IMG/VR virus record: IMGVR_UViG_3300020084_000003
Location: 124,001-188,000 of that record
Length of the DNA stretch: 64,000 nt
Direction: 5' to 3' (one strand)
Numbering within the stretch: position 1 is the stretch's first letter; every line of letters begins with the position of its first letter. The position numbers and the translations under genes were made by a program. This document shows, piece by piece, positions 9,155 to 31,445 of this stretch. The notes beneath the pieces are model-generated. The model worked only from the letters and a program-made list of their open reading frames with translations. It had not been told where the DNA came from and did no database searches.

Positions 9155-9218
9155 ACTATTTTCCTTTTGTTTCACGTGAAACATAGGGGCGGGATGATCC
9201 CGCCCCCTGTTGATTGCA

Positions 9219-11837: not shown

Positions 11838-11883
11838 GCTATACTCCTTTTTATTCGGAGCATAGCATGAAAATATTAAATTG

Positions 11884-12622: not shown

Positions 12623-12756
12623 CCTCTTGTTTGCGTGTGATTCTGTTATGCCATATCTCTTCCGAGTCGTCAATCATTTTCTTTCTATTGACACCCTGCC
12701 CCTTCCCATGATATTCTGCGCGGCCAGACGAATCAGTAAAAAGAAAAGTGTGGCAA

Positions 12757-12975
12757 TTATGCCACACTCAACTCCGTAATCTTGCAGGGAAATACTTCTT
12801 CCGTTGTCATGAAACCGCCGAAGTGAACCTCGATGCCGAACCAATGATTCGGATTCATTCCTTCCGGCAGAGGATCAATCTTGACCACGCGACCCGTTGA
12901 ACCTGCGGGGATCGGCTCGACCCCTTCAATGATGACCAGCGGAACGATGTTCTTGACGATGGAACCAACTTGCAT
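12757..12975 (-). CDS. Small beta-rich hypothetical protein
   Basis: AGGAG RBS and cassette promoter. Confidence 0.65.
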   Translation of the reverse strand: MQVGSIVKNIVPLVIIEGVEPIPAGSTGRVVKIDPLPEGMNPNHWFGIEVHFGGFMTTEEVFPCKITELSVA

Positions 12976-13166
12976 TTTGTTCTCCTGTTTCTGATGATTC
13001 TGTTATGCCATATCCATTCCGAGTCGTCAACATTTTTCTTTCTATTGACAGGTTGCGGGGTTGTGTGATATTCTCGCCCGCCCTGCCCCTGCCCGATTCG
13101 CATTGGAATGTTTCACGTGAAACAAAAGCAAGAGGGGCAAGGTTTCCCCTGCCCCTCTCTCTTGTC

Positions 13167-13457
13167 TTAGGCTTCCGCCTTGGCAGCGCGACGGGCCGCG
13201 TTGCGTTCCATAGTCGCAAGCCACGAACGGGCTTTGCCGGTCAGGGCAGGGACATGAGCGGGACGGCCACGCTTGCCAGTAGGTTCCGCCGTTTTCATCT
13301 CGACCCGGCCCATCTCGACCAGTTTCAGCAGCAGATGGCGCGAGGGGATGTTCTCAGCATCGCCCGTATGGATGGCGCGGAGTGCAGCCACGATGGCGTC
13401 ACGGTTGGCGAAAGTAGCGGGACGGCCACGGGCGGCTTTGGTTTCGGTGTTGGTCAT
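13167..13457 (-). CDS. AT-hook (RGRP) / winged-helix-like protein, copy 2
   Basis: Close paralog of 9219-9524. Confidence 0.75.
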   Translation of the reverse strand: MTNTETKAARGRPATFANRDAIVAALRAIHTGDAENIPSRHLLLKLVEMGRVEMKTAEPTGKRGRPAHVPALTGKARSWLATMERNAARRAAKAEA

Positions 13458-13753
13458 GAGGTAGTTCCTTTCTCGTTTGTGGGCGTCTTGCCCGTTTCCA
13501 TGAACTATAGATGCCACATGGATTCGATTCGTGCAAGAGGAAAAATGACTTCCAAGCGAAAAAAGTTGTAAGCCGTTGAAAGTAAACGGAAACTTTCTTT
13601 TCTTTATGAGAATCACCCCATGCGCGGGCGCGAGAGAATATCACAAGGAACGGGCATGGGTCAAGGGTAAAAATGATTTGGTGCAATTGAACTTTGGGGT
13701 TGTGCTTGCGTTGGGGATGTGTCAGAACTGACAGGACGCAACAACAGAAGGAA

Positions 13754-13972
13754 ATGAGATTGCATCCCACCTATTACGCTTTAGGTATCGTGACGGATGC
13801 GCGAGGACTTCAACGGATGGCAACTTTTCTTAATCTAACCAAATGCGGCAACACTTTTGCAAATGGTAACAGGATGCTACAATATGATAAAGAAAACAAT
13901 CTTTTGCTCTTGAACTCGACAAAAGATGATGCCTTGAGACTCAGCGCACGATTCAACTTTGAGTTTGAATGA
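13754..13972 (+). CDS. Hypothetical protein, paralog of 6338-6571
   Basis: Sequence similarity. Followed by a terminator and a parS site. Confidence 0.75.
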   Translation: MRLHPTYYALGIVTDARGLQRMATFLNLTKCGNTFANGNRMLQYDKENNLLLLNSTKDDALRLSARFNFEFE

Positions 13973-14173
13973 AAGAAAGAAAGAGGCAGGGGAAACCCTG
14001 CCTCTTTTGTTTCACGTGAAACAGTTTCGCAGCGAAACCACCGAATCACTTTTCACGTGAACGCGGGAGAATATCAAATAAATAACTATAGGTCAACAGG
14101 AAAGATTGAGTTGACAAACCGTTCTGGTTGTGCGAGTATTGGAATCAGAACTCAAACATGAAAGGAATCGAAA

Positions 14174-14377
14174 ATGATTGTTATCGTGGAACATATGGAT
14201 AAACAAAATCCTGATGGGCGCTATATGAAAGACGTTATCACCAATGCAAAAGCAGCGGAATCGTTCCTCGGGCAAGTCAATATGTCCAACAAAAACAAGG
14301 GCAAGGGCGAGGCTCAGGCGGGTGACGTGATCGGAAACTTGCGTATCGTGAAAATTTCCGAGAAAAATAAAGCTTGA
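14174..14377 (+). CDS. Small hypothetical protein
   Basis: TTGACA promoter and AAAGGA RBS. Confidence 0.65.
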   Translation: MIVIVEHMDKQNPDGRYMKDVITNAKAAESFLGQVNMSNKNKGKGEAQAGDVIGNLRIVKISEKNKA

Positions 14378-14430
14378 CGCGAATCAGGGATTAGGGCATG
14401 ATGGAATCACATCAACAAAGGAAACCAGCC

Positions 14431-14616
14431 ATGTTCTTGTCCCTGACCAAAATCCGTGAAGATGCAATGAAAATCATCAAGGAAAACAACATCACTTGCC
14501 CGGCAGAGGTTTACTTTGCCGTCATCAACGCGACTAACGGTGACGTGATTCAAAAGCGCGTCAACAAGGTAGTTGATAGCATCTGCCGCGAATTGAACAT
14601 CCCGCAAGAGTGGTAA
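14431..14616 (+). CDS. Small hypothetical protein
   Basis: Own promoter and AAGGA RBS. Confidence 0.65.
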   Translation: MFLSLTKIREDAMKIIKENNITCPAEVYFAVINATNGDVIQKRVNKVVDSICRELNIPQEW

Positions 14617-14958
14617 GACACCATCGCACAAGACCTCAGAAGCCCGCCTAGTGCGGGTTTCTTGCTTTTGTGGGTCTACCTACCAGAGCAGCATAACGCG
14701 GCTCACAGGGCAATTTTTAGGGGGTTGACACTACGGGCAGAGGTATGATATTCTCCGCGACTTTTTCCAATAGTGATTCGTATTTCGCTTTTCTTTCAAT
14801 ATAGATTAATGCGTCACAATATCTTTTTGAATATTTAATGTAAGCATCACATTCTTTAATTAAACGAATTAATTCTAATTCATCCATTTAATTCTCCTTT
14901 TCTCTCCTGATCTATTTATGAGAAAAGGAAAAGGGGCATTTCTGCCCCTTCCTGTTTC

Positions 14959-15330
14959 CTATGCGCTGATCTTTTCCAGCACTTCTTTTTGATTGGCAAT
15001 CGCCTTGTCCAGAGCATCATTGATGAACATGGCAACGGCAGGAACCTTGTCAGGTCCGCACAGCGTGACAGCCGCAAGCCCTTCGGCATCTTCACGGGTG
15101 AACATGGGGGCAAAGGTAATGCCCGTCACGTGCCCTTTCAAGACTTCGCGGCGACCATTCACGGCAGGGGCGAAATCGTAATCCATGCCCATGCCCGCGA
15201 CAGGATTCCACACAACCCAACCGTGCGAGACAATCGAGTTTTTGATTTTGCGGGCTTCACATTTTGCGATGAACTCGGCGGCATCCTTGGAAACCATATC
15301 GCGCAGAGCCTTGGCTTGTTCTTCGGTCAT
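14959..15330 (-). CDS. Hypothetical early protein
   Basis: Cassette promoter with AAAGGAACCC RBS. Confidence 0.7.
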   Translation of the reverse strand: MTEEQAKALRDMVSKDAAEFIAKCEARKIKNSIVSHGWVVWNPVAGMGMDYDFAPAVNGRREVLKGHVTGITFAPMFTREDAEGLAAVTLCGPDKVPAVAMFINDALDKAIANQKEVLEKISA

Positions 15331-15517
15331 TTCTGGGTTCCTTTCCCTTTGCTGATGATTCTTTATCTCACATCCCAAACGATTCGAAAAGCGAAAATTG
15401 ACATAGGGGCCAATTTTTTATAGTATTGACACTATACCCTCTCCTATGATATTCTTCCGCGCCCATATAGAGAGTGATTCGAAAAGGGTGTGACATTTCT
15501 GCCACACCCTCGGTAGG

Positions 15518-15781
15518 TTAGGCAAGTTTCCTTGCCAGCCTCTCTTGATATTGTTGCATCCGTTGTTCTGCGAACGTGATGCAGCCGACTCCCACCATAC
15601 CGAACTTTACCGCGTTGACTTGTGCGCGGATGTAGGTTGCATTAAGTTTCCGAAGAAACTTCGTGGCGGGGTCGTTGTTTGCCACTTCACCCCACAGAGA
15701 CGAGTCTTGGCTGACGTTCTCTTCATAGTAGTCGATGCGGGCGAACATTGCTTTGCAGAGGTCATTGAAGTTGCGGATCAT
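15518..15781 (-). CDS. Hypothetical early protein
   Basis: Same cassette leader as 14959. Confidence 0.7.
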   Translation of the reverse strand: MIRNFNDLCKAMFARIDYYEENVSQDSSLWGEVANNDPATKFLRKLNATYIRAQVNAVKFGMVGVGCITFAEQRMQQYQERLARKLA

Positions 15782-15955
15782 CTTTTGGGTTCCTTTCCCT
15801 TTGCTGATGATTCTTTATCTCATATCCCAAATGATTCGGAAAGCGAAAAATGACTGACAGAAACACTTTTTTCGAATCACCCAATGCAAAGGCGGCGCAG
15901 AATATCACACTCAGACTAGCAGTCAAGAAGAAAAAAGGGGATTGCTCCCCTTCCT

Positions 15956-16273
15956 TCACAGGTTCCACATTTCCAGAATTGCATGGGCTTGCTTTACCGC
16001 ATCCCGGTCAAGGTGCCATGATGGGACTCCACCTTCAAGATTCAGTCCCGTTCCCCGCACTGTTTTGAAAGTGTCCAGATTGTAACGGGAAACAAATTGC
16101 CCGAGGATCGTGTCACCAATTTTGTCAAACCGATAAAGAATGTCGTAAAACTCAACCATCGGTTCATCTTTTTCGTGGGTGAGTTGCATCTTATGGCCGT
16201 AGCAGTCGCCTTTTTCCACAACGCGCATGTTGAAGGCTTCACCGCTTTTGTTCTGGATAGTTGCGAGTTTCAT
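15956..16273 (-). CDS. Hypothetical phage protein
   Basis: Same cassette leader. 'VEFYD..Y....GQFVSRY' motif. Confidence 0.7.
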   Translation of the reverse strand: MKLATIQNKSGEAFNMRVVEKGDCYGHKMQLTHEKDEPMVEFYDILYRFDKIGDTILGQFVSRYNLDTFKTVRGTGLNLEGGVPSWHLDRDAVKQAHAILEMWNL

Positions 16274-16364
16274 CTGTTGGGTTCCTTTCCCTTTGCTGAT
16301 GATTCTTTATCGCATAGCAGAAACGATTCTGCAATAGTAAAAGGGGGCATTGCTGCCCCCTTTT

Positions 16365-16655
16365 TCATCCCATTGGAGTCATTGTCCTGATCCCGAAAAT
16401 GATTCCGTCGATGTAAGTTGCCATTTCCGACGCATTGACACGACGCGAGAGAGGGCCGAACGTGGACTCGCCCGTGGACTCTTCCATTTCCCGCAGGATA
16501 TAACCGCCATAAATGGGGGCATGATCCAGCTTGATGTGGCCCACGTTTCCGTCAAACGTGCCGTTTGCGTTGCGGGTATAGGGCGTTTCGGGACGGTTCA
16601 GAATCTTGTTCAGGCGGGTAACTTTCGCTTCCAGTTCTTTTTTAGTAACGCGCAT
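16365..16655 (-). CDS. Hypothetical early protein
   Basis: Same cassette leader. Confidence 0.7.
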   Translation of the reverse strand: MRVTKKELEAKVTRLNKILNRPETPYTRNANGTFDGNVGHIKLDHAPIYGGYILREMEESTGESTFGPLSRRVNASEMATYIDGIIFGIRTMTPMG

Positions 16656-16824
16656 TTGGGTTCCTTTCCCTTGCTGATGATTCTTTATCGCATATCCGAA
16701 AGCAGATTGCAAGAACTTTTTTGGGGTTGACGATACATCCCTTCCCATGATATTCTCCCGCTCCAACTGCCTAGATGATTCGTTGTTTCACGTGAAACAT
16801 AAAAGAAAAGAGGGGCAATGCCCC

Positions 16825-17079
16825 TCAATCCTCTTCCGGGTCAATTGAATAAGAAAGAACATCAATCAACTTTTGTCTTTCTTTATCATCACAAAGAAAC
16901 TCAACAAGGGCAGTTATCTTTGAGTATTTGGTATCATTGAAGATACCGAAATCAGATAAAAGGCTTTGAAACTTTTTAAGCATTAACTCTTCACAATGGT
17001 CAATTGCCTTTTCCCTTGTTTCAAACATTTTCCCGTCAATTTCATAAACGGTTTTAGTTGCAATCCGACGCATTTTCAT
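16825..17079 (-). CDS. Hypothetical protein
   Basis: Translationally coupled to the upstream ORF. Confidence 0.6.
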   Translation of the reverse strand: MKMRRIATKTVYEIDGKMFETREKAIDHCEELMLKKFQSLLSDFGIFNDTKYSKITALVEFLCDDKERQKLIDVLSYSIDPEED

Positions 17080-17354
17080 TTCCCTTTCAATTTGGCTTCA
17101 CGTGCAGCCCGCAATTCTTCCCGATATTCTTTCCCGTAAAGTTTATTGAATTTGCGATTATATTCCCGCATCATGGCGAAAAGTTCGCGTTCTTTTCGAT
17201 AGGCTTCCTGCCATTCCGGGGTGGCCTTGATGTGGGCGGGGGTCAGACCCATCGGGCCACGTTCATCACCGGACACGATGCGAAGGCGGATTGCGGCAGC
17301 ATCATGCGCCATATCAATCATGGCTTTCCCGGCTTTTGCTTTCAGATAGGTCAT
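17076..17354 (-). CDS. Hypothetical protein (GPMGLTP..IKATPEW motif)
   Basis: Cassette promoter and RBS. Confidence 0.7.
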   Translation of the reverse strand: MTYLKAKAGKAMIDMAHDAAAIRLRIVSGDERGPMGLTPAHIKATPEWQEAYRKERELFAMMREYNRKFNKLYGKEYREELRAAREAKLKGK

Positions 17355-17509
17355 GACAAGGTTCCTTTCCTCTTTTCCTGATTCCTTTATGCCATTTTGA
17401 AAATGATTCGTCAAGCACTTTTTTTAGATTGACAACCAATCCCATCCCATGATATTCTTGGCGGCTTTCCGAATCAGTAAAAGAAAAGGCGGGTTTCCCC
17501 GCCTCCCTC

Positions 17510-17911
17510 TCACCACCCTCCGATCCAATAAGGCTCATAATTTTCACCCTCAGACGGCGTTACCATATAAACCGACTCTGGCCCCTCTGCATCCTCGTAA
17601 ACCCGTTCCACGTGGCGCTTATAGGCTGCTACGCTAAGGGGCATTTCGCTGATATAGCTTGCCCGCGTCCCGTCGCAGTCACGCGATTCACGTATAACGA
17701 AAACAGTCCCGCGTTCTGTTTTCTTTTCTTCCATAGCATCGCGGATCAGTTGTTTCTCTTGAAGGGCATCCCAATGATTCCCGTAACGATTTTGATGGCC
17801 TTCGGCACCCACACCAAAAACACCATCAACATCATATTTTCCGCCATGTTTGCGGAAGTTTGCGCGAATTTTCAGAAAATCATATTTGCTCAGGTTGACT
17901 TTGGAGAACAT
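17510..17911 (-). CDS. Hypothetical protein
   Basis: Cassette leader with AAAGGAACCC. Confidence 0.7.
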   Translation of the reverse strand: MFSKVNLSKYDFLKIRANFRKHGGKYDVDGVFGVGAEGHQNRYGNHWDALQEKQLIRDAMEEKKTERGTVFVIRESRDCDGTRASYISEMPLSVAAYKRHVERVYEDAEGPESVYMVTPSEGENYEPYWIGGW

Positions 17912-18076
17912 GATTCGGGTTCCTTTCCCTTTGCTGGTATCCCTTTATCGCATATCCAAAAGAGGATTGCAACAAATATTTTCGAATCAGTTTGGGAAAA
18001 GGTGCGGGAGAATATCATAGAACCTACAGGCAGGCAATAGAAAAAAGGTGTGACATTTCTGCCACACCTTCTGATC

Positions 18077-18418
18077 TTATCGGAGGTAGTCGGGACCGGT
18101 CCACTTGATCCACGACAAATCCCCTTCTGCCAAGTTGCCCCGCGCTTGGTTGCGGGCAGGGGTTGCCCATCCGGCAGGCTTCAAAATATCGCCATATTTG
18201 AACTTCTTGTCGTCATGGCAGTTGACAATGAAGCAATGCACCGAATTGTCGAGAATCACCTTGATGTATTTTTTACCTTCCGTGTAAGTCAGGATTTCAC
18301 CCGACTCCATCTTGGCAACATGGCCCACGGCATAGCTGTTGCCTTCCGCAAGGCTTTTCGCGTTCCACTTTTTGTAGTCCGCGATAATGGCATCCAGAAG
18401 GCTTTTGACGTTCAGCAT
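18077..18418 (-). CDS. Conserved phage hypothetical protein (GKKYIKV...GDILKPAGWATPA..ARGN)
   Basis: Motif recognisable from widespread myophage hypothetical proteins. Confidence 0.7.
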   Translation of the reverse strand: MLNVKSLLDAIIADYKKWNAKSLAEGNSYAVGHVAKMESGEILTYTEGKKYIKVILDNSVHCFIVNCHDDKKFKYGDILKPAGWATPARNQARGNLAEGDLSWIKWTGPDYLR

Positions 18419-18478
18419 CTTTGCAATCCCTTGTTTTGTGTTTCTGTGATTCCTTTTTACAGGAACCACATTGACTTG

Positions 18479-18805
18479 TCAACCCCGCGTGACTTGGTAG
18501 CGTTTGCCGGGAACGGCATGTTCAACGCAAGTCGTGTTTTCATAGGGGTTGAATACGGCAACGAACGTGTTGCTGCCTTGCTGGATAATGTCATATTCCC
18601 ATTGATAACCGAGTCCATCGACCTCGCCAAGCCCCGAACCAATGTAACGAATATCTTCCGAATATTCCATAATGTCAGCAAAATGTTCCACATCATAGCA
18701 CTGCGCCGCGACAGGCTCAACCTCGATGATGCTGGACATATACCCATCAGCGAAAGCGGCAGACGTGGAAAGTATCAGGGCGGCGATGGTTGCAAATTTG
18801 GTCAT
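18479..18805 (-). CDS. Secreted/periplasmic acidic protein
   Basis: Signal peptide MTKFATIAALILSTSAAFA. Confidence 0.65.
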   Translation of the reverse strand: MTKFATIAALILSTSAAFADGYMSSIIEVEPVAAQCYDVEHFADIMEYSEDIRYIGSGLGEVDGLGYQWEYDIIQQGSNTFVAVFNPYENTTCVEHAVPGKRYQVTRG

Positions 18806-19751
18806 GGTTCTCGTTCCTTTCGGTTGTGTTTTGTTTCTCTGTGATTCTGTTATGCCATGAATGAAGATGATTCGCAAGCACTTTTTCAAAAATCTTTTTC
18901 CTTGACTTGATCTTGTGTTGTGTGATATTCTCTGCGAATTTTTCGAATCAAAAAAAGAGGGGGATTTCTCCCCCTTAGTTATTCGTTTACTTGCATTGCA
19001 ATTGCCCAGACACTTGCGCCTTCTTCAATGCTCATATCATGACGCTGACAAACTGCGGCAAGATTTGTTCCATCCGGTTGAATTTTCACAATTTCTTCCT
19101 TGATTTTCTCATACATGACTGCTTTGCCCATTATTCCCGTTCCCCTTCATCGTCAACCCGAACGTCCAGAAGTTGATTCCGATTGTCGCGGGCTGCAAGG
19201 CGTTGTTCGCGCCGTTGCTGGCGAACGCCATTGCGATCACGTTTCCGATCACGCGGGGTGAATTCTTCGTCGTCTTTTTCAAACCATTTCGCCATTTTGT
19301 TTCTCCTATGTCTGGCGCTTCGTTGTGATTCTGTTATAGCTGATTCGGTTCAGGTTGTCAAGAATAAGTTTTTTTCACCCATTCATCAAAATTGGTATCG
19401 AAACCCTCGAAAATACATTCCGAATTGACATAATTTTCAATCGTCCCATCATGAAACGAAACCGTGTAAATGGGTTCCAAATTGTCACCACCAACATCTT
19501 CCATCCGCATCCCCACTATATGGAAAGGTTTTCCGTTGTGGTTGGTGCAAGTATCTGCATAGAAAAGCTTTCTCAAATTAAGATTCGGCGTTCCCACGTC
19601 ATTCTCCTTTTGCTGTTGTGATTCCTTTATGCCATACCCATTCCGATTCGTCAATCAATTTCTTTCTATTGACACGATACAGTATGGTGTGATATTCTCT
19701 GCCGCCCAGACGAATCACAAAGAGTGTGACATTTCTGCCACACCCTTGTTT

Positions 19752-19985
19752 TCAGACTGCCTTGTAAGATTTCACTTGACGGGACCGGGTGAAAGATTCG
19801 CCTTCATGGATACTGTAGCCGATAAACTTGCGTTTCTGGCATTCACGCTTGGCGATAGCTTCCGAGAAGTCCATACGGTTGCGGGCGTCCAGAATAATCA
19901 CGGCACGATCCCCACAAGCAGGAATTGCCTTTGATGGTTTACCCGGAAAGGCAACAGACATTTGGTAAAATTGAGCGTAGCGCAT
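19752..19985 (-). CDS. Hypothetical protein
   Basis: Cassette promoter TTGACG-17-CATAAA at 20015-20043. Confidence 0.7.
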   Translation of the reverse strand: MRYAQFYQMSVAFPGKPSKAIPACGDRAVIILDARNRMDFSEAIAKRECQKRKFIGYSIHEGESFTRSRQVKSYKAV

Positions 19986-20105
19986 GAGAGGTTCCTTTCT
20001 CTTTTCCTGATTCCTTTATGCCATACCCATTCCGATTCGTCAAGAACAATTTTCATCTTGACACTATCGGTGTTGATATGATATTCTCTGCCGCTTTTGC
20101 GAATC

Positions 20106-20784
20106 AAAAAAAGTGGGGCAACCGTTCCAAACAGTTGCCCCGTTACGTCATATTATTAGCCCCTGACGCGGGGGATGCACAATGGTCGTCTGACCATTGC
20201 AAAACCTGTTTCATTTCAACAGGCTTGGCAATGGTGGCATATATTAGCCTATATGCCAGAGGCTTATTCACCTACCCAGATGTTGCCATTTATTTACACA
20301 AATAGCTCGCTGTTTTGACCTAATAGGATTTACGTTACAGCGCGGGATTTTCCCTTCAGGCCCGACGCAGCGGATTTTCCTGTAACTACCTACTAGAGCA
20401 GGATTTAGACTGCCGTGACAATCCCTTTTCTGTTATCGCGTCCCCTCTCTTCTATACGGGAAACGGCACGGAGTTTAATGGACTGACAGCACCCTGTCTG
20501 TATGATCCATTTTATTTTTCTATACTTTCTTTTTTTACATAAATTGGCCGCGCGTCCCGGCCTGCGCGAATGGAATTACATGGCTTTTCCTTCCCTGCTA
20601 TCCTGTCCATCTTTTTTTATCGGCTGGACATTTACCGCAATGATTAAACTTTCTCTATATGTATTTTTACACTCATAAATTAAGGTTAACTATTGGGGCG
20701 GATCACGCATGTTTCAATTCTCCCTAGTTGCATCTAGTTAACGCCATTTAGGTTCAGAGCCATCGGGTTCTTCCCGATCCCTAT
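20106..20784 (-). ncRNA. Putative large (~680 nt) structured non-coding RNA
   Basis: Promoter TTGACA (20814-20819)-17-TAGATT (20791-20796) and a terminator hairpin with U7 at 20106-20141. There is no minus-strand ORF of 60 aa or more. Many nested stems have G-U wobbles only on the minus strand. Confidence 0.7.
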
Positions 20785-20827
20785 GCAAAAAATCTACCAT
20801 GTGATTCTCTGCATGTCAACACCTATT

Positions 20828-21815: not shown

Positions 21816-21972
21816 CTGCTTTCTCCTTTGCTTGTGTGATTCTCTTATGCCATATTCATTTCCGATTCGCAAGTGAAAAGTTGCGCTTGACATTATTTCT
21901 TCTGGATGATATTCTCACGCGCACGATTCGAATCGAAAAAGAGGTGTGACATTTCTGCCACACCTACTTCTT

Positions 21973-23072: not shown

Positions 23073-23298
23073 GAAGTCCTGCCTTTCTTTGTTGACTTTT
23101 GTTGTTGCATCCAAGATAGGCAATTTGGTCACACAGTTCAACAGGAAAGAGATTCGCCATATTATTTCGATCTATTGCCATTGACATTGTTATTGATTCG
23201 CGATATTCTCTGCACCCTGACGAATCACAAATGAATAGGTGTGACATTTCTGCCACACCTATTTTTCTTAAAAGAAAAGGGCCGACTGGCCCTTGACT

Positions 23299-23706
23299 TT
23301 ATTCTTCGGGGTTGGACGAAACGTCAGCGAAATCTTCCGATTCGGCTTCGGCAGCGGCAGCAGCTTGCGCGGCCTTTTCCTCTGCCTTGGCGCGGTTGCG
23401 TTCGATCAGCTTGACCCACGAATTGCCCTTGCCAGTCAGCGACGGGACCAGAGCGGGACGGCCACGGCCACGGGTTTCGCCTTCCGCCAGCGTGGCAGCT
23501 TCCAGCTTGACCATGCCCTCTTCAACCAGTTGCTTGACGATGAAGCGCGACGGCATCTTGTCAGCGTTGCTATCGCGGATTGCGACCAGAAGATCAAACT
23601 TGCTGTCGCGATCAGCCAGCGTGGGCTTGCGGCCATTGTTGGCGCGACCATCGGTTTTGACTTCGGCTTGAGCGGCGACTTCGTTGGTTTCAACTTGAGC
23701 GTTCAT
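23299..23706 (-). CDS. AT-hook / winged-helix-like protein, copy 3
   Basis: PSRF..KQLVEEGMV...RGRGRP..VPSLTGKG. GC-rich codon usage. Confidence 0.75.
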   Translation of the reverse strand: MNAQVETNEVAAQAEVKTDGRANNGRKPTLADRDSKFDLLVAIRDSNADKMPSRFIVKQLVEEGMVKLEAATLAEGETRGRGRPALVPSLTGKGNSWVKLIERNRAKAEEKAAQAAAAAEAESEDFADVSSNPEE

Positions 23707-24635
23707 GATGTAGTTCCTTTCTTTCTGGGTTGCGGCGTCATTGCCTGTCTCTTTCGATGATTAAGATATAGACGATGATTCTGATTCGCACAAGAGGAAA
23801 AATGCAGATCAGCAAACTTTTTTTCGAATCGGTCCAGATGAAAAGCGCGGGAGAATATCACTGGATAGATTCATTGTCAACAGCTATTTTTGTTTCACGT
23901 GGAACAATGTCAAACAAAAAAGGTGTGACATTTCAGCCACACCTTCCAGTAGTTATAATCTGATATGTTTTTCTTTCAAAAATTACTTCAATCCCGCATT
24001 GCTGCACCGCCAATAGTTTTAAAGAAAGAAAAGTTAGAAGTATCCCTAGAAAAATAGTTTTTGCCCAAAAATTCATTTTGCATTTTGTCCCTTTCAAATG
24101 AAGAAAAATAACACCCATAAAAAATAACCTGAAATAATTACTGTTACTATCCCCACAATAACAGCAATTAATCCCATATAAAATGTTAAAGTGTGAAATC
24201 TAACACCCATGAAATAAATGCCACCAAATATCAAATATAGTGACAAAACAAATGCCACCCCTATTAGAATAAAATAAAAGATGGCAAATGTTTCTATCAT
24301 TTCATATTCTTTCCACAGAAGTTATTTCTAACCCATGATTCGTCAGTATGTTATACACCATTCTCTCACAGGTTGCAACCTCTTTCCATAGAAAGCGCCA
24401 CTCTTGAAGATGCTTCACACGAAGCACATCCTCAACAGCAACGTCTAGATCACGTGGGTTGTTCTTGCTATAACAACAGAAAACATTCATCTTTGGTTCC
24501 CTTTCATAGCTGATGATTCCATTCTAATCTATTTAGAATCAGAAGTCAACTCTTGACAATGAAAGTGGTTAATGATATTCTCTCAAACTGATTCGCCATA
24601 GAAGAAAGGTGTGACATTTCTGCCACACCCCATTT

Positions 24636-25046
24636 TCAGCTAAGAAATTCCCTCTTGACATAATTTTCCAGTTTCCAGTTCCCCTGAATCTGTTCAATGT
24701 CAGGGAAATTGCTATCCCTTGGACGGTGCGGGTCGTCTTTCCCGATTTGAATGACGACACTATAATCACCTTCAACCCCACCATATGCCTTGTAAGCGTC
24801 AATCAAAAGGCTAGTGGTCAAGGTTTCGTCGTCGGCATAGCCGCAACAATCAAGTGCGGATTTGCGTGTCTTAGGGTTGAAATAGACCGTGCCGACCTCG
24901 ATCAGAAAAATATTATCGGGTCCGCCCATTTCCGATTCCGATACAACATCGACAATATCAGCATAATCATCATCCGGGTTGTTCATGCGCCAGAAATAGC
25001 CGCCATTTTCCAGATTCATATCACCGTTGTAATTCCATTTCGCCAT
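24636..25046 (-). CDS. Acidic hypothetical protein
   Basis: AGGAG RBS and cassette promoter. Confidence 0.7.
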   Translation of the reverse strand: MAKWNYNGDMNLENGGYFWRMNNPDDDYADIVDVVSESEMGGPDNIFLIEVGTVYFNPKTRKSALDCCGYADDETLTTSLLIDAYKAYGGVEGDYSVVIQIGKDDPHRPRDSNFPDIEQIQGNWKLENYVKREFLS

Positions 25047-25315
25047 TGTGATTCTCCTATCTGGCGTTGCTGTTGATTCTTTATGCCACATCTCAAACCG
25101 ATTCGCAAGGACTTTTTTAGAAAACTTTTCGCTTGACACATACAGGGTGGGTGTGATATTCTCCGAGACCGATTCGCAATATTGAAATAGGGTGTGACAT
25201 TTCTGCCACACCCCATTGTTTCATTTATCCAAAACCCATTTTCCGTTGACTTTTGTATACCATTTTCCTTTGGTATATTTTTTCGTTGTATTTGTCAGTT
25301 CGCAATGATAAATCA

Positions 25316-25606
25316 TCAGAATTGGACTCCGAACTCGATTTCGATTGCTTGCTCAATGGAGCGTTTCAGGTTGTAGGATTGGAAAGCCCATCCTGCACCA
25401 TAGCGTTTCCCGCGATACTTGTTGCAATAGGCCGGGCGATACCACTTGCCATCCTTGCCCGTGAACATGAATACGGGGATGTAATAGCGCGGGTTGCCGT
25501 TCACGTCACTGTCAAGGCGGATTGCCGAGTCAACGATTCCTTTCACCATTTCGCGGTGTTCTTCGGTGGCGGTAACTTCACGTTGAACTTGAGCGGCGGT
25601 GTTCAT
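25316..25606 (-). CDS. Hypothetical protein (DVNGNPRY...YRGKRYGAGW.FQSYN)
   Basis: AGGAG RBS and cassette promoter. Confidence 0.7.
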   Translation of the reverse strand: MNTAAQVQREVTATEEHREMVKGIVDSAIRLDSDVNGNPRYYIPVFMFTGKDGKWYRPAYCNKYRGKRYGAGWAFQSYNLKRSIEQAIEIEFGVQF

Positions 25607-25704
25607 CTGGTTTCTCCTTTGCTGGTGTGATTCCTTTATGCCATAGTGAAAACGATTCGTCAATAGCAAAAAAGAAAAAGGTGGCTGTTACGCCACCTTC
25701 TCAT

Positions 25705-25911
25705 TCACCCATTATCCGAAACGAATTGCTGGCCCTTGGGCGTCAGGACGATTTCAGCCAGACCCATTTCGATCAGCTTTTGCTGATAATAGGCAGTTTC
25801 GCCGTTGATTTTTTTCAGCGAATTGGCGATAGCAGCTTTGTCGCTGTTGCCCTTGCCCCATTTCGACGGACGGCCACGGCCACGTTTCACTTCTTCGGTC
25901 ATTGTCTTCAT
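25705..25911 (-). CDS. AT-hook / winged-helix-like protein, short copy 4
   Basis: KRGRGRP...KLIEMGLAE..LTPKG. Confidence 0.65.
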   Translation of the reverse strand: MKTMTEEVKRGRGRPSKWGKGNSDKAAIANSLKKINGETAYYQQKLIEMGLAEIVLTPKGQQFVSDNG

Positions 25912-26848
25912 CCTTTCTTGGTTGCTCTCTATGTTCTTGTTATCGCATGTCCAGAATGATTCGTCAACAGCTTTCTTCTACTAGGACAGAAAAAGTTTCA
26001 CCGATTCGTGAGGGCGCGGGAGAATATCAGATTGACAATGATGTGTCAACAAAAAAAGTGTGGCATTTCTGCCACACTTGCCTGTTCCTCAATGATTTAT
26101 TTGCTAGTATCCCATTTGCTTATTTTTATCGGATTGCCAAGAGTCACCGGCATTGGGATGCCCTCGGTTATCCTCTTGCTCTTGCTGCCTTGTATCACTA
26201 TCATTGAAGTTTTCGTTCATTCGATCTAGAGAACCAATTTTCTGGTCTTCTCTTTTATTTTTATTATCCATTTCATACCTCATGTTTGTTACTACTATCA
26301 TAACAATAATATAACTCATGAGGCACTAAATGGTTCCCTAGTCTATAGAGTAAATTGTCGAATATTGCAAAGCAAGAGGAATATATTTTTCAGGATAACC
26401 CTTTTCCTTTAGAAGATTGATATAATCTTGCTCGGTATAGTCTGATTTGATCTTTACGGGAAACCCATAAGCCCAACCACTAGGCGGATCAATTAGAACA
26501 TATTTCACCCTACCAGACCCACCGCTTGCAGTTGGTTTTCAATATCTTCCATTGTGAAAGCAATGTCTGCAATCACAAAGTCAGTCCCGTGACGGGTGAT
26601 TAGACCCATATCAACAAGGAAATCTTTCTGCTCATCTGTGAGGCTAATTTCTTCCCCATCTTCTTTCAGCATATACATGACTATCTCCTTTCGGTTTCAT
26701 TACATCCCTTACTGATAAGTCCCTTATAGCCGATTCTCTTCTCTGATGCAAGAGAAACTTTCTGTTGACTCCTACAACCTTCCATGATATTCTATGGTCG
26801 TTTTCGAATCAGAAAGAAAGGTGTGGCAGAAATGCCACACCTATTTCT

Positions 26849-27448
26849 TTAGATATAGTCAATCCTTCCATTTTCGTTGAAAGTCCATTCATTAATCTCT
26901 GCCAATTCTTTGAAGGATTCTTCGCTGGTTTGATCCTCATAATCATTTTGCAGTTGTTTGTAAAGCCATGCCGACAAGTCTTTCAATACTTGGCGGAATA
27001 CATCTTCTGCATCGCAGCCCGCATCAAGCCAACCATGATTGCGGCGTTCATCTTCCATATCAACGGAATAACCGTGATAATCGGAATAGGTGAATTTTGC
27101 AGAAAGCGAATAGAAGCATTTGCGCTGCATTGCGGAAAGTTCCTTTGCAATGCGATGCAGTTCTTCATCTTGCGGCGCATATTCTTTGATCTTTTTCACC
27201 ATTTCTTTGCGGAAATAGTAATAGCCAGAAAATGCCGCATAGCTTCCCTGATGATAGAAACCGGAGAATTGAACATCTTTCGACTTTACTTTAAAGCCGA
27301 GAATTTCGCAGATTTGCAGGAAGTCATCATATACACCATCCCACCAGTCATGATTGCAGGCATAGCGCGAGATAGCTTCTTGTTTGGCAGTGTCCGAAAG
27401 TTCCGAGAAGTCATAGACAGTCTTTTCAACCAGTGCAGTGATAGCCAT
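26849..27448 (-). CDS. Acidic phage/plasmid protein (TVYxFxELSDxAKxxA...DWWDxVYDDF family)
   Basis: The N-terminal motif resembles a family often labelled 'antitoxin of toxin-antitoxin stability system'. Its function is unproven. Confidence 0.6.
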   Translation of the reverse strand: MAITALVEKTVYDFSELSDTAKQEAISRYACNHDWWDGVYDDFLQICEILGFKVKSKDVQFSGFYHQGSYAAFSGYYYFRKEMVKKIKEYAPQDEELHRIAKELSAMQRKCFYSLSAKFTYSDYHGYSVDMEDERRNHGWLDAGCDAEDVFRQVLKDLSAWLYKQLQNDYEDQTSEESFKELAEINEWTFNENGRIDYI

Positions 27449-27591
27449 TCTCTTTGATCCTTCTGTTTCTGTTTCCGTTACATCTCTTATAGCCAATGCC
27501 GATGTGATTCGCAAGCACTTTCTTGGAAAACTTCGAGGTTGACAGGGTGATAGGATGATGATATTCTATAGAACAAAACGAATCGGAGACT

Positions 27592-28197
27592 ATGATGTTT
27601 AATGAAATTGATATAAAGTTATTAAAACGATTAATAACTTATGATTATAATACAGGTAAAGCTTTTTGGAAAAAAAGAGACAAAGAATATTTTTATTATG
27701 ACAACAGAACTTTAAACACATGGAATTCAAAATTTGCAGGCACAGAAATTAAAAGCTTAAAAGATGGTTACTATGTTTTTAGACATGAAATAAATGGTGT
27801 TAAATATAGAATAAAATTGCATAGAGTCATATTCGCATATCATCACGGTTATTGGCCTAACGACTTATTAGATCATAAAGATGGAAACAAAATTAATAAT
27901 AAGATAGACAATATAATTCTTTCAAATAAATCTGAAAATGCAAAAAATAGCAAACCAAAAAGCGGCAGTGGATATAAAAATATAACATGGGAACCTAGAA
28001 TAAATAGATGGTCAATTAGATTTAGAGTTTCGGCTGGACATAATATATCAGGTGGTAGCTATAAAAACATAGAAGACGCAGTTAAAGCAAGAAATGAATT
28101 ATTCTTAATATATAATCATCCTCCCGCCAGAGACAATCCAAATTGGGAATATATAAGAGAAAAAGAGGGGAATCAACCCCTCAATTCACCAATTTGA
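27592..28197 (+). mobile_element. Freestanding HNH homing endonuclease with an AP2-like domain
   Basis: 'LHRVIFAYHHGYWP..LLDHKDGNKINNKIDN' and 'GSYKNIEDAVKARN'. AT-rich, opposite strand to its neighbours. Confidence 0.85.
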
Positions 28198-28531
28198 AAA
28201 TAACTTTACCATGTTGCAGAAGTTGTTCGACTACATCATAGCGATAGGTGTCAGGATAATGCCAAAAAGCACCTACAATTTCGCATTCCCCTTCATCGTT
28301 AACATCCATTGACTCGGCAATGCAAATATCGGATGAAAGTCCGACAAACGGGTTTCCTTCACCGGCATCAAAGGGATGATAGCTGCCATTGGCAAAGTAA
28401 TGTTCGAAACCTTCGATCAGGATAAGAATGTCATCCTTTTCCTCTGCCAACTCTTCCATTTCCTCACGAAAATCCTCATGCAACGTGATTTCCAGATCGC
28501 CATTTTCCAGCACCGATGCGTAGAGTTCCAT
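28181..28531 (-). CDS. Highly acidic hypothetical protein (possible DNA mimic)
   Basis: 116 aa, very rich in D/E, with a cassette promoter. Confidence 0.65.
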   Translation of the reverse strand: MELYASVLENGDLEITLHEDFREEMEELAEEKDDILILIEGFEHYFANGSYHPFDAGEGNPFVGLSSDICIAESMDVNDEGECEIVGAFWHYPDTYRYDVVEQLLQHGKVIFKLVN

Positions 28532-28584
28532 TTGGTTTCCCTTTCTGTTTCGATGATTCTTTATCGCATGTCAGAAATGATTCG

Positions 28585-28842
28585 TCAAGCCACCAGTTCA
28601 TCACGTTGCGAGATTTCGCAGCCATGTGCATCTGCATGGGCGATAGCTTCTGCACAAGTATCAAAAACAGGGAATTTCCATGCACAAAGTTCGCCTGCGG
28701 CATTGCGATGTGCGCGGCAACCCATAACATCAGACGTAGTTGCAGGGACTTCTTTGCCCAACACAGTCGGAATTGAGCCAACATAGCCCCAACGCTGAGA
28801 AGGGAATTGAATGATGTGAAGGCCAGCTTTTCCACCGAACAT
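28585..28842 (-). CDS. Hypothetical protein
   Basis: AGGAG RBS. Confidence 0.65.
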   Translation of the reverse strand: MFGGKAGLHIIQFPSQRWGYVGSIPTVLGKEVPATTSDVMGCRAHRNAAGELCAWKFPVFDTCAEAIAHADAHGCEISQRDELVA

Positions 28843-29250
28843 ATTTGTCTCCTTTGGTTTCTCTATGATTCGTTTGTAGCGTATTGAAAACGATTCGTCA
28901 AGCGAGATTCATGCTAACCCGATAAACAGCATAAAAAGATTTTTTCGGAATAATGGAATTTTGCAAAAAGTTCTCCGCAGACTTTTTTTCACAAAAGAAT
29001 GCAGCATCATTCCAATTTTCAGTAAAATAGGCTGCACCGGAATCATAATATGCAAGATATTTACCGTTACCATTAGAAACTACAAACAAATCGTCCATCA
29101 CATTCCCCTTTGCTGTTTCCTTCTTCTAACAGATTCGTTTTGAAAGTGCAAGAGAAAAGATTCCTTGACACCCTATACCAATCCATGATATTCTCTATGC
29201 CTTCCAGACGAATCAATAAGGGTGTGACATTTCTGCCACACCCATTTCTT

Positions 29251-29607
29251 TCAAACAATCTGCCAGACGTGGAAGGCATTATCGCGCAGATTGCGCTCAA
29301 ACCCATAACCATTATCGGTTGCACATGCTTCCCAGAAGTCAAGTTCACGAGAAGAAATATCTTCCGGGTTGACTGCAAGGAGGTATTTGTCAGCAGCAGC
29401 GACAATGGCAGCGGATGCACGATCATAGCCACCACCAGTTGCGCGGGCAGTCTCCATCTTGCGACCAAGCCAATGCACATAGGCCGTCACGCTCAAGCCG
29501 CTCTTGCTGGTATGGGTGATGATGCGGGCGACATATTCACCATTGGATTGAATGGCATAAACCGAACCACCGAGTGCGTTGGACAGTTTTTCGTAGACGT
29601 TCATCAT
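29251..29607 (-). CDS. Hypothetical phage protein (A.GGGYDR.SAA motif)
   Basis: AGGAG RBS and cassette promoter. Confidence 0.7.
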   Translation of the reverse strand: MMNVYEKLSNALGGSVYAIQSNGEYVARIITHTSKSGLSVTAYVHWLGRKMETARATGGGYDRASAAIVAAADKYLLAVNPEDISSRELDFWEACATDNGYGFERNLRDNAFHVWQIV

Positions 29608-29759
29608 TTTTCTCCTGTGCTGGTGTGATTCTCTTATGCCATAGTGAAAACGATTCTGCAAGCGAAAAGATTCCTTGACACCTTATGCCAATCCATGATA
29701 TTCTTTGGCCGTTTCCGAATCAGAAAGAGAAGGTGTGACATTTCTGCCACACCCTTTCC

Positions 29760-30125
29760 TTATCGTGCTGCAACAAAAGTGACGTTGCGCGGGGCATCAT
29801 CAATGTCATAATAACGGGTATCAACTGCCCGATAACGAATTCCGAACTTTCCTTTTGCGAAAGAAACTCCACCTTGAACCCCAAAAAAGCCCATAAAATC
29901 TTTCATGGCTTGGCGAGTCGTGGTGGTCATATAGCGGCAATGGTCAAGCGAAACCTTGATTGCACGGGGATCAGACTCAAGCTCAAACTGAGCAATTTCG
30001 GACCCATGCAGACGGCAGGAAAAGACATTGCCGCCCATGTATTCAATCGTGCGATTGTGACCAACTTTGACTTCACGACCAACCGCTTGAATTTCATCCA
30101 GCGAGATTTCTTTCATCTGAGCCAA
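29760..30125 (-). CDS. Hypothetical phage protein (LHG..IA...TxTT motif)
   Basis: AGGAG RBS and cassette promoter. Confidence 0.65.
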   Translation of the reverse strand: MAQMKEISLDEIQAVGREVKVGHNRTIEYMGGNVFSCRLHGSEIAQFELESDPRAIKVSLDHCRYMTTTTRQAMKDFMGFFGVQGGVSFAKGKFGIRYRAVDTRYYDIDDAPRNVTFVAAR

Positions 30126-30406
30126 GGTCTTATCTCCTATTTGGTGTTTCGTTGTGATTCTGTTTTAGCCTAGCCGAAGCGATTCGTCAAGCTAGAAATT
30201 CACGCACCACCGTTTTCATATCTTCAAATTTTTCAGACTGAGCTTGGAAATTGTAGCCATTAAGACTCGCAGTCCATTTGCCATGACGATTCTTGTAAAG
30301 AACCCCGATCATATCCAGATCATTATTTGCATTTTTCCAGATTGCATAGGTGCTGGCCCCATTTTCACGGGGTTGATTGTGCGAAGAAAAACTGATCTTT
30401 TTCATA

Positions 30407-30688
30407 TTAACCCTCCACAGGAATTTCAATGGAAAGAATGGTATCTTCGGGATACAATTCTTTGAAGATTTTAATGCAATCTTCAACCGTTCCATAAATG
30501 GTAGCAGTCCATTCTTTACAGTCTACATTTGCTGCAAAGAAAGTGAAAGACGAAACTGCAACGTTGTCATCATATTGGCGAACAATATGAAAACCTTTAT
30601 CTTCATTTACCATTTTATCAATGGCAGTTGAAGTCGTTTGAACCAAGAAAATGTCACAAGTGTCTTCATTGACTACAACGTATTTCAT
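30407..30688 (-). CDS. Hypothetical protein
   Basis: Cassette promoter and RBS. Confidence 0.6.
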   Translation of the reverse strand: MKYVVVNEDTCDIFLVQTTSTAIDKMVNEDKGFHIVRQYDDNVAVSSFTFFAANVDCKEWTATIYGTVEDCIKIFKELYPEDTILSIEIPVEG

Positions 30689-31445
30689 CTGATTCCCTTT
30701 CCGTTTCTGTTGTCCTCTTATGCCATCCTCAAAACGATTCGTCAAGAACTATTTTCGAATCACCAAATCTGAAAAAGCGCGGGAGAATATCATAACCTTG
30801 CAACGCAGTCAATAAAAAAGTGGTCGCTAATCATAGCGACCACCCTTGATTTTTGCCTTGTCACGCGAACGCTGCGCTTTAGCAGATTTCGTTTGCGCCC
30901 CTTGCTTTCGCACGATCAGGTGTTGCACGAAAGGGTTGCGGGGTTTGGGAAGCGATTTCTTAGCCATGACAGTCTCCGTTGTTTCGATGACTAAGATATA
31001 GATGATTCGCTTCTTATTGTCAACTACCGAATTCGTGCAACATAATAATCAATGCAACCTTGATAGTCCATCACTTCACCACTACATTCTTGCTTGGCGT
31101 ATTGCAGACGATCACCATCAGTGTAGGGCGGGACACGATCACATGCGGCAATGAAAAGAACCAGAAGACCCACGATCACGAAAGCTTTGTTCATTCTTGT
31201 TCATCCTTCTTGTTGAAGATAAAATGTTTGATGGCGAAAAGAACTCCGACAGCAAATGCTGCCATAATCAGAATAATATTATTCACCACATTCACCTTTC
31301 CATGCCCATGATTTATCTACACAAATTTCTGCATAGCCACGCTCTACTGCATCTTTTTCATACATATCCTTTGCAAGCCAAAATCCAAACAATGCTGTGC
31401 CAGCAACGAATGCAATGATGCAAATAAGATCAATGAAATCACTCA

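Follow-up and report, generated by a model that had tools for sequence, protein, structure and literature searches.

Transcription activation by GcrA at methylated sigma-70 promoters is described in Caulobacter crescentus (Wu 2018, PMC5887438), where the consensus recognition site is TGATTCG, more broadly YGAKTCK around a GANTC core (Haakonsen 2015, PMC4647560). Activated promoters carry these boxes centered at −30±2, −20±1 or +5 to +30, in either orientation and in some cases as two boxes, and GcrA acts as a monomer on a long flexible linker (Wu 2023, PMC9976885). We analyzed a 64,000-nucleotide window (positions 124,001 to 188,000 of IMG/VR record IMGVR_UViG_3300020084_000003) from a giant T4-like phage recovered from lake-water metagenomes. 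We find about 80 host-type promoters packed into a 30-kb early region, nearly all of which carry the heptamer preferred by GcrA, so the phage probably ties its early genes to that host system. As in Caulobacter, these are sigma-70-type promoters with YGAKTCK-flanked GANTC boxes, best form TGATTCG, in the −35/−10 spacer or just downstream of the start. Unlike the Caulobacter cases, the boxes occur at very high density (about 3 YGAKTCG-type boxes per kb), the −35-proximal box is fused to the −35 hexamer, and one promoter class adds a box at about −3, which is not a described GcrA position.

Four other systems resemble parts of this arrangement. The PeSL cassettes in hyperplastic regions of T4-like phages are likewise composite units of a conserved terminator stem-loop and an early sigma-70 promoter that flank small variable ORFs (Arbiol 2010, PMC2839356; Comeau 2014, PMC4122927), but PeSLs are not described with host-factor boxes, whereas many units here also hold a divergent or tandem second promoter, of a class described below as class B. 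In the terminal repeats of phiCbK-like phages, clusters of CtrA boxes (TTAA-N7-TTAA) place many binding sites for a host cell-cycle regulator in the promoters of small genes in one genome region, described as 'lytic deferment' (Mascolo 2022, PMC9437464). The regulator differs, and that study scanned alphaproteobacterial phages with a GcrA matrix and reported no clustering of sites, although Sphingobium phage Lacusarx belongs both to its set and to ours. T4 middle promoters also carry an extra conserved element near −30 alongside a −10, but they lack a −35 and need phage MotA and AsiA, while here the −35 is consensus. Finally, phage-derived genes are expressed in a GcrA-dependent way in Brevundimonas subvibrioides (Adhikari 2021, PMC7987155); that case is one operon of a probably defective prophage with no promoter architecture described, rather than the multi-promoter early region of a lytic phage.

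A first-pass annotation had noted gene-driving promoters with one GANTC overlapping the −35, a second near the start site and a −10 lacking the conserved last T, and our analysis confirms this observation. Its example site at 20015–20043 (minus strand) reads TTGACG, a 17-nt spacer, then CATAAA followed by GGAATCA. The sequence TTGACGAATC occurs 14 times exactly in the window, all on the minus strand, and with one mismatch there are 25 hits against 7.1 +/- 2.6 in shuffled sequence. An iterated weight matrix finds 25 sites between 12673 and 30745, again all on the minus strand, which read TTGACGAATC(G/A)-N10-TGGCATAA-N1-2-GAATCA and which we call class A (Table 1). Of these, 22 have a first GANTC at promoter positions 5–6 to 10 that overlaps the last base of the −35 (centre about −28), and 21 have a second GANTC at positions 30–31 to 35 that abuts the inferred start site (about −3). 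GANTC pairs spaced 25 nt apart are the commonest spacing in the genome (17 pairs, of which the 10 GAATC pairs are all on the minus strand). The −10 hexamers are CATAAA, CATAAC, CATAAG, GATAAA, CTAAAA and TACAAA; none ends in T, and all are preceded by TG at −15/−14. In 23 of 25 cases a ribosome-binding site and start codon of a small gene follow 54–72 nt after the −35. As no transcripts support these assignments, start sites and timing are inferred from sequence alone.

Table 1. Coordinates of the early region, its class A promoters and representative neighboring elements (positions in the 64,000-nt window).
Position	Strand	Feature	Box 1	Box 2	Start codon	Remarks
3200–33000	.	Hyperplastic early region				Small genes (mostly minus strand), about 80 sigma-70-type promoters, conserved terminator hairpins, about 250 GANTC sites (1.5 times the Markov expectation)
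12637–12673	-	Class A promoter	CGACTCG	AGAATCA	12613	
12994–13030	-	Class A promoter	CGACTCG	AGAATCA	12975	
15354–15390	-	Class A promoter	CGAATCG	AGAATCA	15330	Degenerate −35 (TTTTCG)
15806–15842	-	Class A promoter	CGAATCA	AGAATCA	15781	Degenerate −35
16298–16334	-	Class A promoter		AGAATCA	16273	TTGCAGAATCG
16676–16712	-	Class A promoter	lost (GCAATC)	AGAATCA	16655	
17378–17414	-	Class A promoter	CGAATCA	GGAATCA	17359	
17936–17972	-	Class A-like promoter	none	none	17911	
18446–18482	-	Class A-like promoter	none	GGAATCA		
18841–18877	-	Class A promoter		AGAATCA	18805	TTGCGAATCA
19325–19361	-	Class A variant		AGAATCA		CGAATCA box in the spacer (centre about −18)
19618–19654	-	Class A promoter	CGAATCG	GGAATCA	19597 (GTG)	
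20007–20043	-	Class A promoter	CGAATCG	GGAATCA	19985	Example site of the first-pass annotation
21081–21117	-	Class A-like promoter	CGAATCG	none		
21437–21473	-	Class A promoter		AGAATCA	21418	TTGCGAATCA
21836–21872	-	Class A promoter		AGAATCA	21815	TTGCGAATCG
22372–22408	-	Class A promoter	CGAATCG	AGAATCA	22344	
25072–25108	-	Class A promoter				Drives the 136-aa gene at 24636–25046; a homolog of this gene in another viral contig (L098) has the same promoter design
25627–25663	-	Class A promoter	CGAATCG	GGAATCA	25606	Best match to the matrix
25931–25967	-	Class A promoter	CGAATCA	none	25902	
28552–28588	-	Class A promoter	CGAATCA	AGAATCA	28531	
28865–28901	-	Class A promoter	CGAATCG	CGAATCA	28842	−10 TACAAA
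29625–29661	-	Class A promoter		AGAATCA	29607	TTGCAGAATCG
30154–30190	-	Class A promoter	CGAATCG	AGAATCA	30125 (TTG)	
30709–30745	-	Class A promoter	CGAATCG	none	30688	
20058–20106	+	Representative class B promoter				TTGACA-18-TATTCT with TG upstream of the −10; CGAATCA centred at about +10; back to back with the class A promoter at 20043; points into the terminator of the upstream minus-strand gene
20115–20141	-	Intrinsic terminator				12-bp stem followed by a T run, ending the gene upstream of the promoter pair; a GATTCG follows the T run
19720–19745	-	Terminator hairpin				One of 15 near-identical hairpins with core GTGRCA-N4-TGYCAC between 12750 and 29750

The further claim that these promoters form a separate GANTC-containing class is wrong. 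A second class in the region, class B, reads TTGACA-N16-18-TGaTATTCT and has 46 copies in the window (33 plus, 13 minus), of which 45 also carry a GANTC box, at +3 to +25. Treating the missing T at −7 as a special feature is likewise not supported, since more than 80% of sigma-70 promoters in the sphingomonad Novosphingobium lack it (PMC8407463).

We next examined the identity and placement of the boxes. The commonest heptamer is TGATTCG, which occurs 68 times in the window against 14.5 +/- 3.8 in shuffled sequence, and 52 of these lie in 4–33 kb. The three commonest flanked forms, TGATTCG, TGATTCT and CGATTCG, all fall within YGAKTCK, as do all 22 class A boxes next to the −35. Five of the 21 start-site boxes, however, read GGAATCA and do not fit YGAKTCK, and the position of about −3 lies inside the future transcription bubble and outside the published GcrA positions. 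Anchoring on every TTGAC pentamer in the region gives sharp GANTC peaks at offsets 6, 15–16, 31, 42–44 and 49–51, and 70% of the 143 TTGAC pentamers in the region have a GANTC within 66 nt, against 19% elsewhere in the genome. Box centres of about −28, about −20 and +5 to +25 match the three position classes of GcrA-activated promoters in Caulobacter.

The same design recurs in unrelated siphoviruses of Sphingomonadales. The cultured Erythrobacter phage vB_EliS-L02 has 18 exact copies, all on one strand, after its terminase gene, and Lacusarx and metagenomic kin carry the same design, although related Erythrobacter phage XM05 and Citromicrobium phage RXM lack it, so that it is not obligatory for these hosts. 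What is conserved is GANTC with its flanks and not a sequence inherited by descent. Box 1 is CGACTCG at two sites in this phage, in Lacusarx the second box sits in the spacer and reads CGAGTCG or CGACTCG, and in contig L098 the second box keeps its centre but is flipped to TGATTCG. A second GANTC is present in 10/12, 23/25, 7/8 and 23/30 promoters of the four phage sets, against about 10% expected from base composition. These data bear on the possibility that no trans-acting factor is involved, and that the GAATC elements are core-promoter and leader features tuned to the host polymerase (an extended −35, a discriminator and start-site context) that were copied around the region by recombination of promoter-terminator cassettes, as with PeSLs. 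In its favor, the region has the PeSL-like build of near-identical terminators plus promoters (PMC4122927), several promoter copies are clear paralogs (families D7, D9 and D12 of promoter copies), and in Lacusarx the start-site element is often ATCACC without a GANTC. We nevertheless consider this reading improbable, as the same heptamer occurs at four different positions, in both orientations and in both promoter classes, GANTC survives changes of its central base and of its position, and the design recurs in lineages with unrelated sequence between the boxes and 38% against 59% GC. Furthermore, GANTC is avoided outside the early regions of all three phages, at 0.79 (this genome), 0.68 and 0.70 of the Markov expectation.

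In order to find a phage-encoded reader or writer of the boxes, a search that the first-pass annotation had proposed for CcrM and GcrA homologs, we performed profile searches of the phage. These found no GcrA, no CcrM-type (PF01555) methylase and no Dam-type methylase. No MotA and no credible AsiA were found, and the only sigma-like gene is a gp55-like late sigma. Sequence comparison found no regulator shared between this genome and vB_EliS-L02 or Lacusarx; apart from replication and nucleotide-metabolism enzymes and a few unannotated ORFs, no protein is shared between the T4-like phage and the siphoviruses, and none of these lies in the early region or looks like a regulator. Only one early gene is shared with any kin contig. 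A different protein could still read the TGATTCG boxes, either a fast-evolving phage early or virion-borne regulator or another host DNA-binding protein, which would switch the early region on or off much as MotA boxes mark T4 middle promoters or operators mark repressed promoters. The boxes are confined to phage early regions and are rare in host-family genomes, which hold only about two TTGACGAATC each, and most early genes are ORFans that could hide a regulator. Orientation and position are also tightly coupled in class B, with CGAATCA centred at +9/+10 and TGATTCG at +17, suggesting a defined protein-DNA geometry, and some related sphingomonad phages lack the design. Against this, a regulator needed at the first promoters would have to arrive with the DNA, and the heptamer and three of its four positions coincide with those of GcrA. 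We regard this alternative as doubtful, though it is the strongest of the rivals.

Taken together, the interpretation that these promoters depend on host cell-cycle factors is partly supported. With moderate confidence we read them as host sigma-70 early promoters of a T4-like jumbo phage whose host is probably a freshwater alphaproteobacterium, likely a sphingomonad, that recruit GcrA-loaded polymerase. In this view nearly all embed one or two copies of the GcrA recognition heptamer (TGATTCG/CGAATCA) at fixed places, class A with one box fused to the −35 and one at the start site, and class B, which has a better −10, with a box at +5 to +25 or at about −20. Our analysis establishes the motifs, their positions and statistics, their conservation in unrelated phages, and that the searches found no phage-encoded reader or writer. 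The mechanism, including GcrA dependence and any effect of methylation, is inferred: host RNA polymerase would travel with GcrA bound to sigma-70 domain 2, and the tethered DNA-binding domain of GcrA would dock on the box, raising polymerase occupancy and open-complex formation at promoters whose −10 lacks T at −7. If the sites are methylated by host CcrM, activation would be stronger, and early transcription would then follow the GcrA/CcrM state of the host.

The more specific proposal of the first-pass annotation was that early expression depends on GANTC-methylated virion DNA and drops once replicated DNA is unmethylated, giving an epigenetic early-to-late switch. GcrA-dependent transcription in Caulobacter does depend strongly on methylation, although double-stranded DNA binding changes only about twofold, and no phage methylase that could re-methylate progeny DNA was found. 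However, without such a methylase, and with host CcrM cell-cycle limited in Caulobacter, virion DNA may be unmethylated, which also weighs against GcrA activation itself. In addition, the phage has a conventional T4-type late apparatus consisting of the gp55-like sigma and TATAAATA promoters, with 30 TATAAATA motifs within 100 nt upstream of predicted genes and none of them in the early region, which already explains the switch to late genes. The proposed switch, which rests on no methylation or timing data, therefore appears unlikely.

With regard to the inferred host, kin of the phages that share this design infect Alphaproteobacteria, where GcrA is near-universal. GcrA was found in 40 of 41 genomes sampled from the order of an Erythrobacteraceae genome (G006), and its DNA-binding domain is about 71% identical to the solved Caulobacter domain. 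We also note that 17 alphaproteobacterial-type LexA boxes lie in the same early region.

In order to place the early region in its genomic setting, we first examined the virus record as a whole. The record, of which bases 124001-188000 were analyzed in detail, is 284,776 bp long, has 38% GC and carries 32 tRNA genes, none of which lies in the window. It is T4-like, with a gp23 capsid protein that is about 69-71% identical to those of Stenotrophomonas phage DLP6 and Sinorhizobium phages phiN3 and phiM12, and it also encodes rIIA/rIIB, a Dda-like helicase, DNA and RNA ligases and a gp55-like late sigma factor. The N-terminal ~320 residues of the rIIA homolog are 44-51% identical to rIIA of Ruegeria, Rhodobacter and Phaeobacter siphoviruses but only about 34% identical to rIIA of enterobacterial T4-like phages over ~380 residues, which suggests gene exchange among phages of Alphaproteobacteria. 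The record comes from lake-water metagenomes, and no RNA run was found to hold the sequence; the transcription starts discussed below are thus predicted. No close relative of this genome was retrieved, and nucleotide comparison of the early region with GenBank phages returned nothing useful. No Rfam family was found in the window either, so the repeats described below are not RNA genes of a known kind.

The observation made in the first-pass annotation, that gene-driving promoters in this region contain GANTC, is confirmed. Its example site reads TTGACG, a 17-nt spacer and CATAAA, followed by GGAATCA. TTGACGAATC occurs 14 times exactly, always on the minus strand, and with one mismatch there are 25 hits against 7.1 +/- 2.6 in shuffled sequence. 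A weight matrix refined from these seeds finds 25 sites, here termed class A, with the consensus TTGACGAATC(G/A), 10 variable bases, TGGCATAA, one or two bases, then GAATCA. In 22 of these sites a GANTC (box 1) shares its G with the last base of the -35 (centre about -28), and in 21 a second GANTC (box 2) ends one base before a conserved A that is the likely start (centre about -3). In 23 sites a ribosome-binding site and the start codon of a small gene follow 54-72 nt later.

We next asked whether these sites have the features of housekeeping sigma-70 promoters with an extended -10. The -35 hexamer is TTGACG, TTGACA or TTGC(A)G at 23 of 25 class A sites. The 17-nt spacer is followed by TG-G/C and (C/G)ATAAA, such that A at -11 and TG at -15/-14 are in place. 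No class A site has T at -7. The first-pass annotation treated the missing -7T as a distinguishing feature, but its absence is the norm in Alphaproteobacteria and exceeds 80% in Novosphingobium (PMC8407463, PMC7703639), so it does not mark a special class. We also compared these sites with T4 middle promoters, which carry a MotA box at -30, lack a -35 and require phage MotA and AsiA. The sites do not fit this type, as a consensus -35 is present, no MotCF match was found, and the AsiA match has E = 0.06, below the cut-off.

All the repeated elements of this genome are confined to one part of the window. In addition to the class A promoters, they comprise 15 almost identical terminator hairpins that end the minus-strand genes, an 11-copy perfect palindrome, and a second promoter class (class B) that reads TTGACA, 16-18 nt, TG-a-TATTCT. 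Class B has 46 copies in the window, 33 on the plus strand and 13 on the minus strand, all with at least 4 of 6 matches to the -35 hexamer and, unlike class A, with T at -7. Many stand back to back with a class A promoter, with 15 bp between the -35 hexamers, and point into the terminator of the upstream gene, while others lie in tandem upstream of class A promoters. In build, this is a PeSL-type hyperplastic region of a T4-like phage (PMC2839356, PMC4122927), with the hairpins sitting next to promoters among small ORFs. Coordinates are collected in the table below.

Features of the early region and of the surrounding genome (window positions unless stated otherwise)
Feature	Position	Strand	Details
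All repeated elements of the genome	3-33 kb
Class A promoters	12673 to 30745	-	25 sites
Class A example site	20015-20043	-
Gene with a homolog in viral contig L098	24636-25046
Terminator hairpins	12750-29750	-	15 near-identical copies, GGTGTGACATTTCTGCCACACC plus a T run, separating the small genes
Palindrome	4267-16798 and 23892		11 copies of TGTTTCACGTGAAACA, often just downstream of class B promoters
Convergent class B promoter pairs	4313-4421, 6662-6727, 7300-7366		60-110 bp apart, with a palindromic stretch between them (CTGAAATAGAATC ... GATTCTATTTCAG)
Third promoter variant	9603, 10004, 13536, 23793	-	TTGCACGAATC(A/G), about 17 nt, TATCTTAATCAT
GTTC-N7-GTTC	3249-11319		17 copies, mostly GTTCACGTTTTGTTC or GTTCAYGATTCGTTC
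HNH homing-endonuclease genes	11319-11837 and 27595-28197	- and +	phrog_99, E = 5e-47 and 3e-38
rIIA homolog	59722-62220	-
gp55-like late sigma factor gene	G000:C1:37999-38577 (whole virus record)	+	phrog_234, E = 9e-51

The first-pass annotation held that the gene-driving promoters form a separate GANTC-containing class. This claim fails, as 45 of the 46 class B promoters have a GANTC box at +3 to +25. In class B, position and orientation are coupled, with CGAATCA centred at +9/+10, TGATTCG at +17 and CGATTCG at +5/+6, and some promoters also have TGATTCG in the spacer at about -20. To test this without using GANTC to pick sites, we anchored on every TTGAC pentamer in the region and observed sharp GANTC peaks at offsets 6, 15-16, 31, 42-44 and 49-51. 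Of the 143 TTGAC pentamers in the region, 70% have a GANTC within 66 nt, against 19% of 765 elsewhere in the genome. GANTC is therefore a shared feature of both promoter classes, which differ in where the box sits and in the quality of the -10. The third promoter variant keeps the -35-proximal box but has TAATCAT in place of the second GANTC.

Regarding the identity of the box, TGATTCG occurs 68 times in the window against 14.5 +/- 3.8 in shuffles, and 52 of these lie in 4-33 kb. The commonest flanked forms are TGATTCG, TGATTCT and CGATTCG. Haakonsen et al. 2015 derived TGATTCG, more broadly YGAKTCK, as the preferred GcrA site among methylated GANTC sites (PMC4647560). YGAKTCK is matched by 22/22 class A boxes next to the -35, by 16/21 start-site boxes and by 24/27 class B downstream boxes. 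Wu et al. 2023 state that GcrA boxes in activated promoters are centred at -30+/-2 and -20+/-1 in the spacer, or at +5 to +30, and report that GcrA acts as a monomer whose DNA-binding domain hangs on a roughly 60-residue linker from the domain bound to sigma-70 region 2 (PMC9976885). Within the 1-2 nt uncertainty of the predicted start sites on which all these positions rest, three of the four positions seen here fit these classes, namely box 1 at about -28, the spacer boxes at about -18 to -20 and the class B boxes at +3 to +25. Class A box 2 at about -3 does not fit; it may act before melting, or through easier melting of methylated DNA, or it may be a start-site element.

Several comparisons suggest that the boxes are maintained by selection rather than by descent. 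Box 1 is CGACTCG at two sites, which still fits the consensus on the other strand. L098, a 56%-GC viral contig, encodes a 43%-identical homolog of one early gene, preceded by TTGACCGAATC(A/G) and, at the same centre as box 2, a flipped TGATTCG. The exact two-box promoter occurs 18 times, all on one strand, after the terminase gene of cultured Erythrobacter phage vB_EliS-L02, and it also occurs in Sphingobium phage Lacusarx (locus L012 in our comparison, 100% identical to KY629563) and in their metagenomic kin. In those phages the spacer sequence is different and the -10 is nearly free, with only TG and A at -11 kept, but the boxes are kept. In Lacusarx the second box usually sits in the spacer and reads CGAGTCG or CGACTCG. 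A second GANTC is present in 10/12, 23/25, 7/8 and 23/30 promoters of the four phage sets, against about 10% expected from base composition. In all three complete genomes (this phage, vB_EliS-L02 and Lacusarx) GANTC is enriched in the early or terminal-repeat region at 1.3-1.5 times the Markov expectation and avoided elsewhere at 0.79, 0.68 and 0.70, respectively, while control pentamers in this genome stand at 0.94-1.13. The promoter is nevertheless not general to sphingomonad phages or to T4-like kin, as Erythrobacter phage XM05, Citromicrobium phage RXM, RcXuper, phiN3 and DLP6 lack it.

In order to determine whether the phage encodes a protein that could read or write the boxes, we performed profile searches of the genome. 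These returned no GcrA family match, no PF01555 (CcrM-type) methylase, no Dam-type methylase, no MotA and no credible AsiA; the one weak PF01555 hit is a PhoH-like ATPase. Additionally, blastp, tblastn and phmmer comparisons of this genome with vB_EliS-L02 and Lacusarx found only replication and nucleotide-metabolism enzymes and no shared regulator.

The cultured phages that share the design infect Sphingomonadales, whereas the host of the present phage is only inferred. GcrA was found in 40 of 41 genomes sampled from the order of an Erythrobacteraceae genome; CcrM conservation is taken from the literature. The DNA-binding domain of this GcrA is about 71% identical to the solved Caulobacter domain, with the RNAVIGKxHRLGL segment, which we take to be the recognition helix, kept. 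A second sign of an alphaproteobacterial host is the presence in the same region of GTTC-N7-GTTC, the alphaproteobacterial LexA (SOS) box type, at 17 copies against 1.9 +/- 1.3 in shuffles. Several of these lie about +20 to +35 downstream of class B promoters, so part of the early region may be LexA-controlled. A scan of 185,579 species genomes for the two-box promoter gave 52 single hits in unrelated taxa, compared with a chance level that we estimate at about 70, and thus gives no host or prophage signal. Host-family genomes hold only about two TTGACGAATC each (43 against 12 for the reversed control in 21 genomes).

Our best explanation is that these are host sigma-70 early promoters carrying GcrA boxes. 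The motifs, their positions and their recurrence are facts of sequence, but every step beyond them is inferred, including early timing, the presence of N6-methyladenine at the sites, dependence on GcrA, recruitment of GcrA-loaded polymerase, help with open-complex formation at -10 elements without -7T, and a boost from CcrM methylation. The interpretation offered in the first-pass annotation, which invoked GcrA and methylation, is in this light only partly supported. Its proposed epigenetic early-to-late switch is not needed and has no support. The T4-type late promoter TATAAATA occurs 51 times in the genome, 30 predicted genes have one within 100 nt upstream, none lies in genome 120-200 kb, which includes the early region, and a gp55-like sigma is present. 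With no phage methylase found, it is also difficult to see how virion DNA would be methylated, and in Caulobacter methylation matters much more for activation than for binding.

In logic, the region resembles the CtrA-box clusters of phiCbK-like phages, although the same study saw no clustering of GcrA sites in alphaproteobacterial phages (Mascolo et al. 2022, PMC9437464). GcrA is so far known as a regulator of cellular genes, and in the literature searched the only phage links are GcrA homologs in phiCbK-like phages and one GcrA-dependent prophage operon. The papers on Lacusarx and vB_EliS-L02 do not describe this promoter. On the reading preferred here, these are phage early sigma-70 promoters that co-opt a host cell-cycle cofactor. 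A phage early region saturated with the best GcrA site at the canonical promoter positions would show that phages exploit this sigma-70 cofactor, and would also give a very dense natural set of GcrA-type promoters with systematic variation in box position and orientation. Because cultured vB_EliS-L02 and Lacusarx share the design, the idea is directly testable, and the shared promoter offers a host clue for uncultured phages. A more far-reaching possibility, which the evidence leaves open but which we consider doubtful, is that lytic phages of sphingomonads from two unrelated lineages have wired essentially their whole early programme (about 80 promoters in this genome) to the host GcrA/CcrM cell-cycle module. 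Infection would then start productively only in cells of the right cell-cycle or methylation state, as a GcrA counterpart of the CtrA-based 'lytic deferment' proposed for phiCbK-like phages.

The early region also contains two HNH homing-endonuclease genes. The palindrome could be a candidate operator or an RNA hairpin. Many plus-strand class B promoters point straight into the terminator hairpins, which would give either antisense RNA or RNAs of about 55 nt, and the convergent class B pairs would give short, fully complementary transcripts.
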